64,000 nt of DNA, taken from positions 542,410-606,409 of the forward strand of contig JAWQFM010000001.1 of NCBI GenBank assembly GCA_033442325.1, written 5' to 3'. A program made the position numbers and the translations under genes. Source of the DNA: Salpingoeca rosetta (taxonomy: Eukaryota; Protista; Choanoflagellata). This document shows, in pieces, positions 3,301-12,277 of the stretch; positions within the stretch are counted from its first letter, which is position 1, and each line of letters begins with the position of its first letter. The notes under the pieces were generated by a model. The model was given only the letters and a program-made list of their open reading frames with translations. It did no database searches and was not told the DNA's origin.

Positions 3301-6300
3301 GAGCTTGGCCTCCTCCAGACTACGCTCACGCTCCCCAACCTGCTCCTTCAGGGATGTAACTTCAGAAGCCAGTGCCTCGACTTGCTCGTTCATCGCTGAG
3401 ATGGCAGTCTCGTGCTGCAAGCGCACGTCGTTCAGCTCTGCCTGTGCTGCTGCCTCAGCCTCGTCCACTTCCTGCGCATGCTTGGCGTTGACCTCATAAA
3501 GCTGTTGCTGGTGCTCTGCGCGTGCCGCGCGTTGGGACTCGTCTGCATCTTCCTTTGCAGACACCAGCTCCGCCTCCAAGCGCTGGCGGCTCTCCTCCAG
3601 AGCAGACACCTGCTCCTGCAAGTCACCCAGCTTCTGCTGCAGCGCTTCGCCTTGGGCGCTGGCCTCGTCCCGTGCCTCAGCTGCGGCCTGAGCAGCTTGG
3701 CTCTTGTCAGCCACCTCCTTCTCTAGGCGCTCAATTTCCACCTTGGACTCGGCGGCCAACTTCGCCTGCTTTGCCTCGGCTTCGTCAGCTTGTGCCTGCA
3801 GTTGCTCGCGAAGCTGTGTCAGCTCCTCCTGTGCGGTAGCAAGTGCCGCTGTCGCTTCCTTGGCTGCGCTTGTCGCCTGCGCCAGCTCTGCAGCAGTCTC
3901 TTGCGTATCGCGCTCTGCACTCTCCTTGAGCACGCGCAGCTCCTCTTCCAGCGCCTCGCGCTCCATACTGTTCTGAGCCAGCTGGGCCTCCGCTGTGGCC
4001 AGTGCTTCCCGCGCCGAGTTCAGGGCCCCGGCACTCTCGGCGCTGCTTGTCTGCAGTTGGTCAATGTCCTTGCTCAGCTGCTCAATCTTCGCCTCAGCGG
4101 CCAACTTTTCCTCCTCTTTTGCATCGAGCTGGGCCTGCAGCTTGTTCATGTTGTCGTCCATGTTCGCGAGCTCTTGCGTCTTGGATTCGAGCGCAAGCTG
4201 GTGCTCCTCAGCCTGCTGTTGCTGCAGGCGCTGGTGTTGCGACACCATCTCCTGGCGCTGTTCCTCTGCAGCCGTAAGTGCCGCCGCCTTTTCTGCGCAC
4301 TCGCCCTTGAGCTTGGAAACGTCGTCGTTTGCCTGCCGCACTGCTGTTTTCAGGCTGTCGACCTCAGCCCGCAATACCACAAGCTCTTCCTCTTTCATGT
4401 CAAGGAAGCACTGCAGCTGCTGCAGCTGGGCGTTGCGTGCTTCCTCGTGCTGCTGCCGCTGCTGCTCGCCCTCGGATGTGGCTGCCTCGGCCTCCTTCTC
4501 CAGGCGCGCAATCTTATCACGGGCTGTGTCGAGTGCGCGCTTGGCTTCTTGCCGCTCACACCGCGCCGCTTCCAGTTGCTCCTCCAGCTCGCGCTGACGC
4601 TGTTCTGCAGTCTCCAGCGAAGCAGCCGTGGCTTGCTGCGCTTGCTGCAACTCTGCGCACTGCGCGTCAACTTCATTCTTCGCGGCCTTCAGCTCCTGCA
4701 GCTCCTTCTCCTGTTGCTCCACCTGCTCCAGCAGCTGTGTGCGGCGGGCGTCCTGCGACTGCAAGAAGGCGACCCGGTCCTCAAGCTCGGAGCATTGTTG
4801 CTGCGCCCGATCGAGCTCAAGCTTGGAAGACTCCCGCAGCTGCGCCAGCTCAGCCTCCAGTGAAGCAGCTTGCCCCGCATTTTCCTGTGCTTTTGCCTTG
4901 GCTTTCTCCAACTCCACATGCGCTGCCTCTGCCGCTGCCTTCTCCTGCGAGGCTTGCGTCGTGAGCTCTTCGCATGCCTGCTGGGCCTGCTGCAGTTCGT
5001 GCGCTGTTGTCTCCTGATCACGCTGCATCGCCTCACGCTCTGTGCTGTGCTGGGTCTTGACGGCGTCAAGCTCTGCCAGGGCCTCCTCCAGCCGCGTTTT
5101 GATGGTGCTGACTTCATCGCCCTTGGAGTGCACGACGGCATCGTCAAACGCGAGGTTCGACTGCAGCTTGTCATTCTCTGCCTTGAGGGCGTTGATCTGA
5201 TCGCGCAGTGCGTCCTGCTTCTCCTCGCCCGCAGCCAACTCAGCCCGAAGCTGCTGCTCAGCCTCCTCCAGCCGCTGCTGCGTCTGTTCCGCGGCCTTGA
5301 GGGCAACCTGCGTGTTCTCGAGCTCCTTCTTCACTGCATACAGCTGCTCGTCCTTGGCCTCGCTCTCCTCGCACAGGGACTCCGCGTCCTCTTGCGCACA
5401 CTCCAGCTGCGCCTCCAGGTTCATGCGCGTGGTGCGCAGGTTCCGCTTGAGTTCCTTCGTGGACTTCTCCTGTGCGGCCATCTCCTGCGTGAGGGCGGCA
5501 AGCTTCTCCTCCAGCGCCACCTTCGCCTGCTGCAGCTCCGTGCGCTCGTCCTGCAGCGACACCACCTTCGCCATGAGCTCCTGCATTTCGCCCTGCAGCT
5601 GCTGGGCAGCCTGTGCGTTGGCCTCCGCCTTTGCCTCTGTCACACGTGCTTGTTCGGCATGCACCTGCTCCTTGAGGGACGCGCACAGCTCTTCAAGCTC
5701 CTTCACGCGCTCCTTGGCGGCCAGTGCGTCGTGGGTAGCCGTGCTCTGCTCCTCCTGTGCAGATTCCAGGCTGCGAACAAGGCTCTCGCGTTCCTGCGCG
5801 ATGTGATCCAGCTCCTTCTTGAGGGCGTGCACCTCCTCGCGGCTGTCGCTGGTCACCTGGGCCAGCTTGCCTTCCAGTGATGCCACAGCGCGGACAAGTT
5901 CAGCACGCTTCTCTTCCAGCTGCGTTGCTCGCTGTGTTTGCGCGGCTGCTTGCGCCTGCACCTGCTCAAGCTTGGCTGCAAGGTCCCGCTGCGCCGCGTC
6001 GTTTGAGCTTGCGTTGTTCTTGATGGCGGTGAGTTCGGTGCGCAGCTGGGCGGCCAAGTCGTCGGCCTCCTTCAGGCGTGCGGTTAACTCGGTACACTCG
6101 TCCTTCTTCGTCTGCAGCTGCTCCTGCAGGGACTCCATATCTGCCTGCGCTTGCGCCAGTTCGTCCTTTAGCTGAGCTGCAGCGCGGGTGCGCGTACGCG
6201 TGCGGGTGGCAGTTGCCTCCTCTGCGTTGTGCAGCTTTTCTCGCAGCGTCTTGTTCTCTGCTGCCAGGTGCTCCAGCTTGGTGAATGCCGCCGACAGGGA

Positions 6301-9960: not shown

Positions 9961-10929
9961 TACACGCACACGCAGACACACACACACACAAATACACACA
10001 CACACACAAATACACATAAACACACACTCTCCCACTCACACACACACAGGTATCCAAATTCACACGCACCTTGACATCATCTTGAAGACGGCTGTTCTGG
10101 CGATGAAGCTGGTCAATGGTCTGGCCGAGGGAGCATGCCTCGCGCTCCAGCTCTTGTACCTGTTGTGCGCAATCGATGATGCGCCATGCACAGGCAAAGA
10201 CGGCATCGGTGAGTTGCCTTTGTACACCACGAACGCGACCAGTTTCATTTGCTTGTTGTTGTTACATGATCGCGAGGGCTGCACACGCCAACAAGACATT
10301 CCAGGCCCCCATTGAGAACTCACGCGACGCTTTGATTCAGCAGCCTGGTTCTTGATTTTGACTTGCGCCGCATTCAAGTTGTCAATCTGGAAGGTCTTGT
10401 TCTGCGTGTCGCGCGTCAACTGCTGCACGCGGCGTTCCAACTCTTCAACCTGGCAGCGCCAGCAGCAACAACAAGGCACAACGTAAAGTGAACCACCGAG
10501 CATGTCGCCCAACTTTGTATTCATGTCACTTGTCAGAGTGAAGGCCAGCTTGACAGCAATGCAAATGTACACAAACAAACAAACAAACAAACAAACAAAC
10601 AAACAAACAAACAAACAAACAAACAAACAAACAAACAAACAAACAAACAAACAAACAAACAAACAAACAAACAAACAAAAAAACAAACACACACACATGC
10701 ACACAAACACACACACACAAAAACAAACACACACACGCACAGGCACAAACACCCACACACACACACAAACAAACACACACACACAAACAACCCACACACA
10801 CACAAACAAACACCCACACACACACACGCACACAAACACAAACACACAAACCAACACGCACACATGACGAACCTTTTGCAGGGCGACCCCTGGCAGGTTG
10901 TTCTTCCACTCGTTCTGACGCCACGACAT
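310..10929 (-). CDS. CENPF: CENP-F-like giant coiled-coil protein, ~2785 aa, 9 exons: 10929-10873, 10449-10324, 10159-10070, 9693-9595, 9372-9217, 9012-8443, 8161-7877, 7539-7429, 7173-310
   Basis: Spliced N-terminus [19 protein letters not shown]|[31 protein letters not shown] aligns with the human CENP-F start (MSWALEEWKEGLPTRALQKIQELEGQLDKLKKEKQQRQFQLDSLEAALQK, recalled). About 2500 aa of E/Q/A/L/K heptads follow, then a basic S/T/R tail ending ECNNQ* (CENP-F ends CKVQ). All eight introns are GT-AG, phase 0. Confidence 0.8.
2492..2714 (-). repeat. In-frame 105-bp tandem repeat (35 aa, five heptads), ~2.1 copies, inside the coiled-coil gene
   Basis: gcagtctccagct recurs at 2492, 2597 and 2702. 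Protein unit: [35 protein letters not shown]. Confidence 0.9.
10570..10690. repeat. (CAAA)n tetranucleotide microsatellite in intron 1 of the CENP-F-like gene
   Basis: Direct reading. Confidence 0.95.
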
Positions 10930-11408
10930 GACGGCGTCCTTGTTCCCTCTGCGTCCCAAAGGAGGTCTCAACAGTGGTAGGGATGAGAGCGGGGAGGGCC
11001 GAGGATGGTGAGGTGCTGGTGTTGTGGTTGTGGTTGTGGATGGATGGAAAATGAAATTTCGAATTTGCCGCGGAAACAGTTACTCGACTTTCAATGTATG
11101 TCTTCATTTAATTTTCTGCTGCCAGGTTTGCCCCTTGTTTGTCGTGTTGCAAGCAAGCAACAACGGCGGACGACAAAAGACCAACAAGCGACCAAGGGCT
11201 TTGCACTGCGCACAACAGACAACAACCCAACAGCCCCAACAGCACAGACAACACACAACCACAAACTGTACACAACAGACACCATCATCCCCTCGCTCAT
11301 TCACCATCCACTGTCCGGGCCGGGACGCAAACAGTGAGTGCAGCCATCACCAGCTAACCCGCTGCCTCATCCTACTGCTGTGGAGGCAACAAGGCAGCAC
11401 CGGCCACC
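10930..11408. promoter_or_regulatory. 479-bp bidirectional promoter / 5'UTR region between the CENP-F-like gene and beta-heavy spectrin
   Basis: Divergent ATGs at 10929 (-) and 11409 (+; perfect Kozak GCCACCATGG). AT-rich core flanked by leaders that are CA-rich on each gene's own sense strand. Confidence 0.75.
11058..11076 (-). promoter_or_regulatory. Putative CDE/CHR (E2F + LIN54/MuvB) cell-cycle element
   Basis: Minus strand reads TTTC-CGCGG-CAAA-TTCGAA: CDE core CGCGG, 4-nt spacer, TTYRAA. It lies ~130 bp upstream of the CENP-F-like ATG. The plus strand also carries TTTGCCGC (E2F consensus TTTSSCGC). Confidence 0.55.
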
Positions 11409-12277
11409 ATGGAAGAGATTCAGCACTCGTTGCAGGTGGAGCGGGAGCAGGTGCAAAAGCGCGCCTTTACGCGCTGGATCAATAGCATCCTGCGTGACAC
11501 GGGCTTGCACATCGACGACCTGTACAGCGACCTCTCTGATGGAACAGTGCTGCTCACGCTCCTGGAGACCATCTCCGGGGCGCAGCTGCCTGCGCCGTCG
11601 CGCGGGCGCCTGCGCGTGCACAAACTCGAGAACTGTGCCCACGCACTCCGCTTCCTGAAAGCAAGCAAGGTCAAGCTGGAGAACATCAGCGCGCAGAACA
11701 TTGTGGATGGAAACCCGCGCCTGATCCTCGGCCTCATCTGGACCATCATCTTGCGATTCCAAATGCAAGAGATCCAGCTCGAAGGCGACGCCAAGTCCGC
11801 CAAGGAGGCCCTTCTCTACTGGTGCCAGAAAGTCACCAAGGGCTACCCCAACGTGGACATTCGCAACTTCACATCAAGCTGGAGCAATGGCATGGCCTTT
11901 AACGCCATCATCCACAGCTTTAGGTACAAATACGCCTCGCAGCTTGTCTGTGTGCGCGTGTGTGCACGTGTGTCTTTGTGTGTGTCTGTGTGTCTTGTGT
12001 GTGTCTGTGCATCTGTGCCTTTCGCGTCTGTCTGTGTGTGTGTGTGGTGCGTAGGTTTGTATTGTCGGGCACCCCTCGCTTTGTCTCTAACTCGACCTAC
12101 TGCCTCAACTTCTTAACGCTTCTTTCTTTTTTTCAACGCAGACCGGACCTTGTGCGCTACAATGATCTTGACCCACAAAAGTCCATTCGCAATCTCAAGT
12201 CTGCCTTCCAAATTGCCGAAGATCACCTTGGCATCTCTACCATCCTCGAGCCAGAAGGTACGCATGTGTGTGTATGT

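Follow-up and report, generated by a model that had tools for sequence, protein, structure and literature searches.

A tandem of an E2F site and a CHR-type hexamer in the start region of a CENP-F-like gene in the choanoflagellate Salpingoeca rosetta

The DNA considered here, referred to as the window, is a stretch of 64,000 nucleotides from the choanoflagellate Salpingoeca rosetta (assembly GCA_033442325.1, contig JAWQFM010000001.1, positions 542,410 to 606,409 of the forward strand). This report concerns a short composite element in which an E2F-type site adjoins a hexamer of the type known as CHR, for cell cycle genes homology region. The element lies within the 479-bp divergent intergenic spacer that separates a CENP-F-like gene on the minus strand, hereafter CENP-F, from a beta-spectrin-like CH-domain gene on the plus strand. 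The features of the locus, in window positions, are as follows.

10873..10929, minus strand: exon 1 of CENP-F, followed by a GT intron (from the sequence; boundary uncertain by ~3 nt)
11011..11060, minus strand: bin holding the 5′ limit of CENP-F RNA coverage (raw stranded RNA reads, few)
11058..11076, minus strand: composite TTTCCGCGGCAAATTCGAA, consisting of GC core CGCGG, spacer CAAA and CHR TTCGAA (sequence read)
11058..11063, strand-neutral: CHR-type hexamer TTCGAA, palindromic, fitting the LIN54 consensus TTYRAA (sequence read)
11064..11071, plus strand: full-consensus E2F site TTTGCCGC (TTTSSCGC; GCGGCAAA on the minus strand; sequence read)
11111..11160, plus strand: bin holding the 5′ limit of the RNA of the divergent spectrin-like gene (reads, runs X17 and X18)
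11409..11921, plus strand: exon 1 of the divergent CH-domain beta-spectrin-like gene (open reading frame; intron 11922-12139)

Exon 1 of CENP-F comprises 57 nt that encode 19 residues, and a spliced RNA contig departs from the genome at ~10870 and resumes in exon 2. Directly after the exon, intron 1 carries a microsatellite of ~300 bp (10560-10860), consisting of (CAAA)n and then a (CA)n-rich tract. The homologues of the divergent gene are named spectrin beta and display PF00307, and RNA supports the GT..AG joint 11921>12140. In run X18 the minus-strand depth declines from 3.4 at 10961-11010 to 1.5 at 11011-11060 and 0 at 11061-11110. Taken together, this limit of CENP-F coverage and the onset of the divergent reads place the element at, or just upstream of, the 5′ limit of the CENP-F RNA, in a gap of ~100 bp between the two start regions. 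The start-site location that characterizes mammalian tandems of a cell cycle-dependent element (CDE) and a CHR is thus found here, with modest support. A spliced contig from another run spans the entire spacer, and some transcripts may start further out.

On the minus strand positions 11076 to 11058 read TTTC CGCGG CAAA TTCGAA, which is exactly the string, oriented towards CENP-F, that an earlier note on this DNA had reported; the observation of the element is therefore confirmed. The A of the CENP-F ATG (10929, minus) is located 128 nt beyond the final base of TTCGAA, in agreement with the ~130 bp given previously. As CCGCGG and TTCGAA are both palindromic, direction is given by their order only, and the order GC core to CHR faces CENP-F. 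Read on the plus strand the sequence is TTCGAA-TTTGCCGC, in which the nominal CDE and its spacer together constitute the full E2F 8-mer, with the A-tract abutting the hexamer. The whole E2F-type site is TTTCCGCGGCAAA and comprises a T-tract, a GC core and an A-tract, the usual shape of E2F sites. Two membership features of a CDE/CHR tandem are present, namely a hexamer from the validated set and a GC-rich core upstream with a 4-nt spacer. The earlier description of the site as a CDE/CHR element with 4-nt spacing thus stands for the spacing and the CHR, while its GC part is a canonical E2F site rather than a low-affinity CDE. A Myb-type site (CAACGG/CCGTTG) occurs at 11161-11166, within ~100 nt of the element. 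An NF-κB-like reading (GGGAAATTC) was rejected, as only the GCGGG subclass fits it.

Within the window the pattern SGCGGNNNNTTYRAA (SGCGG-N4-TTYRAA) has a single match compared with 0.13 expected, and at least one match was present in 12 of 100 shuffles. A first-order model gives an expectation of 0.0015 for the 479-bp intergenic region, a value that applies to a site picked after the window was read. The hexamer TTYRAA is scarce in the window (11 vs 27 expected). The window statistics alone are weak evidence for the element.

The conservation of the element was assessed in related species, identified by a word-based protein search with spectrin exon 1, contig look-ups and a degenerate DNA pattern built on exon 1; the spectrin exon gave no match in metagenomes. 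In the word search the fragments from the relatives were 63-70% identical to spectrin exon 1. Two contigs were used, one from a distant species (L039, reached through the word search) and one from a third species (L043, which the DNA pattern brought up together with L044); L044 belongs to the same species as L039 and was not counted, and L040-L042 are too short upstream. By tblastx the CENP-F exons of both contigs are collinear with those of S. rosetta. The first three exon matches of L043 show 81-95% identity and later ones 36%, while the L039 matches range from 70% down to 33%. In L039 the divergent CENP-F exon 1 sits 198 bp from the spectrin ATG.

The gene strand of L043 contains GCG-CGCGG-GAAA-TTCAAA (GCGCGGGAAATTCAAA) at -217..-203, 202 nt ahead of the ATG, and that of L039 contains C-CCGCC-TAAA-TTTAAA at -78..-64, 63 nt ahead of the ATG; the S. 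rosetta element lies at -143..-129. The E2F 8-mer of L043, GCGGGAAA, displays an S-to-S change inside the consensus. Across the 14-mer GCGG[C/G]AAATTC[G/A]AA the differences between S. rosetta and L043 are confined to the degenerate S position of the E2F site and the degenerate R position of the CHR. Conservation of the CHR, a further membership feature of CDE/CHR tandems, is therefore observed as TTYRAA at equal spacing in two other species. In the 297-nt upstream region of L043 the expectation for the strict SGCGG-N4-TTYRAA pattern on the gene strand is 0.0006. For L039 a gene-strand match to N4-TTYRAA preceded by five G/C bases has an expectation of ~0.03, and a relaxed composite (CpG in the 5-mer, both strands) matches in 243 of 5000 shuffles with a background of 8 in 218 kb. 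An additional perfect E2F site (TTTCGCGC) is located 16 nt downstream of the L039 composite.

Comparison of the three CENP-F promoters revealed no other alignable stretch beyond chance 7-9-mers. A global alignment of the promoters does not put the elements in one column, and the conservation is thus at the level of the motif and is not positional. No spectrin exon is present on the L043 contig, where the upstream neighbour is apparently the last exon of a same-strand gene. Conversely, the spectrin gene of L038 stands beside another neighbour, without CENP-F, and the 900 bp upstream of it contain neither an E2F nor a CHR site. These arrangements indicate that the element goes with CENP-F and not with its spectrin neighbour. 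Further sites were noted on the two contigs. In L039 a second tandem (2600-2575, minus) reads TTTCGCGC-TGAA-TTGAAT, in which the hexamer at 4 nt is not TTYRAA and ATTGAA occurs at 3 nt. In L043 a Myb-type site at ~2216-2224 lies within ~100 nt of its E2F/CHR element, and the 9-mer CCGTTGTTG is shared with S. rosetta at a chance-level E value.

Genome scans were made over the 55.4-Mb assembly with reversed patterns as control. The arrangement GCGSSAAA-gap-TTYRAA occurs 88 times compared with 23 for the control. Gap 0 accounts for 29 of these sites and gaps 1, 2 and 3 for 8, 18 and 8, respectively, whereas gaps 4 to 10 (3, 5, 2, 3, 4, 5 and 3 sites) average 3.6; the reversed control yields ~2 per gap. 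The expectation at gap 0, built on the exact count of AAATTYRAA (491) and on sampled estimates for GCGSSAAA and AAA, is ~4.4 (P ~7e-15). In the opposite orientation TTTSSCGC-gap-TTYRAA was found 88 times vs 24, with a mode at gap 4 (15 sites), the other gaps averaging 7.3. In both orientations the mode thus corresponds to a distance of 4 nt between the GC core tetramer and the hexamer, and the spacing preference implied by the earlier note is borne out genome-wide for an E2F core. The two relatives and the genome-wide spacing counts provide independent support for the element.

The flanks of the 27 distinct gap-0 sites are unique, which rules out an origin of these sites in a transposon or repeat family. 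Several composites elsewhere occur in related copies. The pairs C3:1549896/C3:1555573 (L007/L008) and C11:1001714/C11:1077260 (L018/L019) have identical 60-nt flanks and are therefore part of recent segmental duplications; the composites of the second pair are situated 115 bp before a Cupin_8/JmjC open reading frame. The string TTTGGCGCCAG(C/T)TGCCGTTCGAA, which unites a Myb-type CCGTT and TTCGAA with an E2F 8-mer, is present at C3:942339, C6:1962487, C19:1029150 and C30:309660 and is probably a dispersed repeat. The sequence TTTGCCGCGAGAGATTCAAA was found three times (C9, C30 and C32).

The S. rosetta genome encodes candidate readers for both halves of the tandem. There is one LIN54-like gene (C11:172814-173687) with two CXC (TCR) domains, for both of which the best PDB match is 5FD3, the DNA-binding domain of human LIN54. 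Both YC[DE]C tyrosines are retained, as LKLYCECY and LQRYCECF align to KLYCDCF and KNYCECY; in the human protein these CXC tyrosines reportedly insert into DNA. Each CXC exon of this gene is directly followed by a long intronic (GT)n microsatellite (L029, 1615-1700 and 2440-2500). A LIN9 DIRP domain is present at C26:787585 (40.7 bits), E2F/DP winged-helix domains are represented by seven E2F_TDP matches at ~6 loci, and RB_B pocket exons occur at C32:752171 and C26:304485. LIN37 gave a weak match of 24.5 bits, or 31.9 bits with neighbouring matches. Of the orthologues on which control by DREAM/MuvB would depend, LIN54, LIN9 and E2F/DP are accordingly present, while Rb is represented by its RB_B exons, with RB_A not detected in a six-frame search that did not recover its control either.

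The genes beside other composites were named by Pfam scans of 60 candidate open reading frames, which identified ~20, with no claim that the sites are their promoters. In this GC-rich, intron-rich genome, coding and antisense frames were poorly distinguished by a codon-usage model that had been trained on the window. The neighbours include a DEAD-box helicase, CCT, JmjC/Cupin_8, CRAL-TRIO, an O-methyltransferase, a Ras-type GTPase, SET, an RPGRIP1-type C2 domain, an RB pocket gene and TIMELESS, the last of these 1.8 kb from its composite. At the pocket gene the strict composite GCGGCAAATTCAAA (L027, C32:747900-755900, site 3973-3986) is 290 bp before an RB_B exon, the RB_B exons of this locus being at 4272-4346 and ~4780-4990; the site may be in an intron or act as an internal promoter of the pocket-protein gene. 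Looser signals run in the direction expected for mitotic genes. In 12 kb upstream of nine cell-cycle genes TTYRAA is ~2.7-fold denser than in the control (12 vs 4.4, P ~0.002), which consisted of GC-matched chunks of the same genome and was not promoter-matched. Nuf2 and Bub1 have relaxed composites, and in the NDC80/KIF15 promoter TTTGAA is 2 nt from TTTGGCGG, a pair that falls outside the strict patterns of the scans, with a Myb-type CCGTTG directly beside the CHR (L045, 882-887).

The data show the sequence of the element, where it lies relative to the RNA, that it is kept together with the gene, that its spacing is preferred across the genome and that reader genes are encoded. It is very probable, judging from this sequence-level evidence, that the element is a functional, selectively maintained component of the CENP-F promoter, and E2F is very probably involved at it. 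That MuvB, through LIN54, reads the hexamer and that the site is of DREAM type is the reading we favour, with a probability of about 0.55. The following model infers which proteins bind, in which direction they regulate CENP-F and in which phase of the cell cycle they do so. An E2F/DP site (TTTGCCGC) in tandem with the CHR TTCGAA, at or just upstream of the CENP-F transcription start, would be contacted by an E2F-DP dimer, held by a pocket protein, at the GC core and by the two CXC domains of LIN54 at TTCGAA. The resulting DREAM/MuvB-type complex would repress CENP-F outside the division cycle. Release of the pocket protein by CDK would then allow MuvB, staying on the hexamer, to drive CENP-F later in the cycle, possibly with a contribution from an activator E2F on the E2F site.

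Several observations weigh against the DREAM-type reading. No strict composite was found near ~30 kinesin, 9 cyclin, Polo, Bub1 or 8 MCM loci, so that the enrichment at mitotic genes which the earlier note had envisaged was not seen, and the identifiable neighbours of the other composites are mixed, with no clear cell-cycle signature, although the gene calls are crude. The generic SGCGG-N4-TTYRAA pattern that the note had proposed is barely enriched in the genome (103 vs 75 for the reversed control). Among the generic matches listed, 14 consist of a full E2F site with the hexamer directly adjoining; leaving these out reduces the count to 89 vs 75, which is not significant, and the excess is thus due to these sites. 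A second spacing peak, displaced by +2 in both orientations (gap 2, 18 sites; gap 6, 12 sites), is not explained by the animal 4-nt rule. The commonest hexamer after the E2F site is TTCAAA (15 of 27), the inverse orientation, whereas the classic mammalian tandem is CDE-TTTGAA. The 9-mer AAATTYRAA is 3-fold more frequent than its reversed control (491 vs 159) with ~6% of copies preceded by GCGSS, and may be a motif in its own right. At the locus, the RNA support for the start site consists of 3-5 reads. With respect to the readers, RB_A was not detected in a six-frame search whose own control was also without a match, and LIN52 was not detected by a method that readily misses short intron-split genes. 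The proposal that the cis-grammar of DREAM/MuvB control exists in a unicellular relative of animals is therefore supported in part, by the geometry of the element, its conservation in two other species, the reader genes and the listing of human CENPF as a target (see below), but not by strict composites at mitotic loci.

These data may be compared with what would be expected if the site were an ordinary RB-E2F site, in which only TTTGCCGC is functional and bound by E2F-DP, with TTYRAA reflecting a flank preference of E2F or the site of an unrelated factor and with no role for MuvB/LIN54. The perfect E2F 8-mer in both S. rosetta and L043, the extra perfect E2F site in L039, the frequency of E2F-type 8-mers in the genome (~9300, by sampling) and composite neighbours that are not typical G2/M genes are all in keeping with this explanation. 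It does not readily account for a hexamer held at equal distance in three species and varying only within TTYRAA (TTCGAA, TTCAAA and TTTAAA), while the GC core adjacent to it in L039 departs from the E2F consensus. Nor does it predict the 8-fold excess of TTYRAA abutting E2F 8-mers and the 4-nt peak in the other orientation. MCM genes are classic E2F targets, yet a composite was present at 0 of the 8 MCM loci. We consequently regard a plain E2F site as unlikely.

It could also be argued that the sequence is a conserved element of another factor, or a motif found generally close to start sites (AAATTYRAA flanked 5′ by GC-rich sequence), that has no connection with cell-cycle control. The 3-fold excess of AAATTYRAA, the mixed set of genes beside composites, and the +2 spacing peak and TTCAAA predominance that depart from the mammalian rule point in this direction. 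Both halves, however, fit two well-defined consensus motifs whose readers are encoded in the genome, the orthologous human gene is a CHR/DREAM target, and the denser TTYRAA upstream of the nine cell-cycle genes together with the relaxed composites of Nuf2 and Bub1 would be unexpected for such a motif, which makes this explanation decidedly improbable. A chance match without function is the most remote of the three alternatives and would be very surprising. A match does appear in 12% of the window shuffles, for a motif picked after the window was read, but the gene-strand element is found upstream of two collinear orthologues in otherwise unalignable promoters, where the expectations are 0.0006 and ~0.03, and in S. 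rosetta it sits at the RNA 5′ limit. The DREAM-type tandem remains the interpretation under which the CENP-F element is compared with animal systems below.

The DREAM/MuvB proteins are ancient, and the DNA grammar through which they act has been resolved in mammals, while flies and worms offer some hints of it. A literature search for choanoflagellates and Capsaspora gave no paper on cis-elements of the CHR or DREAM type. What is new here is the cross-species conservation of the CENP-F element together with the genome-wide spacing profile. Together these constitute sequence-level evidence, from a unicellular relative of animals, that the two-contact geometry is favoured genome-wide, that CENP-F carries it at its start site and that selection has kept it with this gene in three species; this cell-cycle wiring thus probably predates animals. 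The scans also provide ~44 candidate sites for mapping the occupancy of LIN54 and E2F.

Mammalian CHR sites are found at the start site, or very near it, in late cell-cycle genes and are active in both orientations; in head-to-head gene pairs the CHR regulates one partner only (PMC4176359). In mouse Bub1, TTCGAA has been validated as a variant of the CHR, with DREAM binding above background, and the CHR genes to which DREAM binds, 148 in all, include human CENPF, BUB1 and NUF2 (PMC4176359, Table 1). By that table the human CENPF promoter, which belongs to the orthologous gene, has its CHR near the start site. A 4-nt spacing defines both the CDE/CHR and the E2F/CLE tandems of mammals, CLE being the CHR-like element, and either orientation of the E2F site is allowed (PMC5716687). 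A CDE is a weak site to which activator E2Fs do not bind, while a CLE is a weak site that resembles a CHR and stands next to a strong E2F site (PMC5716687). Genes with CDE/CHR tandems peak in G2/M, their promoters being occupied by DREAM in quiescence and by Myb-MuvB/FOXM1-MuvB in G2/M.

The S. rosetta element resembles the mammalian CDE/CHR tandems of CDK1, CCNB2 and TTK (Mueller and Engeland) in having an E2F-like GC core 4 nt upstream of a validated CHR, at the start site of a gene that lacks a TATA box and would be active late in the cell cycle, and with cross-species conservation (PMC4176359, PMC5716687). It differs from them in that their CDE is weak and often dispensable, whereas here the core lies within a perfect TTTSSCGC, TTTGCCGC, which is an E2F site by the criteria of PMC5716687, and the nominal spacer is its A-tract. 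With the E2F/CLE tandems of RAD51, CDC45 and MYBL2 it shares a canonical E2F site (TTSSCGC) and a LIN54-type element at a fixed short spacing, both of which are read by DREAM in mammals (PMC5716687). In contrast to a CLE, which by definition is not a functional CHR and does not recruit MuvB alone, the neighbouring hexamer in S. rosetta, TTCGAA, is a bona fide CHR variant. By its sequence, therefore, the element is best classed as an E2F/CHR hybrid that lacks one defining feature of each mammalian class, and G2/M timing cannot be deduced from the element. The human screen found a canonical E2F site and a canonical CHR at tandem spacing in CEP295 only (PMC5716687). The hybrid, rare and with this single human case, is the commonest arrangement in S. 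rosetta, with 29 + 15 sites in the genome. A tentative and somewhat doubtful extension is that this 'double-strong' tandem, a full E2F site whose core is 4 nt from a canonical CHR, is the predominant DREAM docking site of choanoflagellates, which animals later split, by weakening one half, into E2F/CLE tandems in early genes and CDE/CHR tandems in late genes. If this were true, the link between CENP-F and the CHR would be among the oldest traceable cis-regulatory connections, older than the animals themselves.
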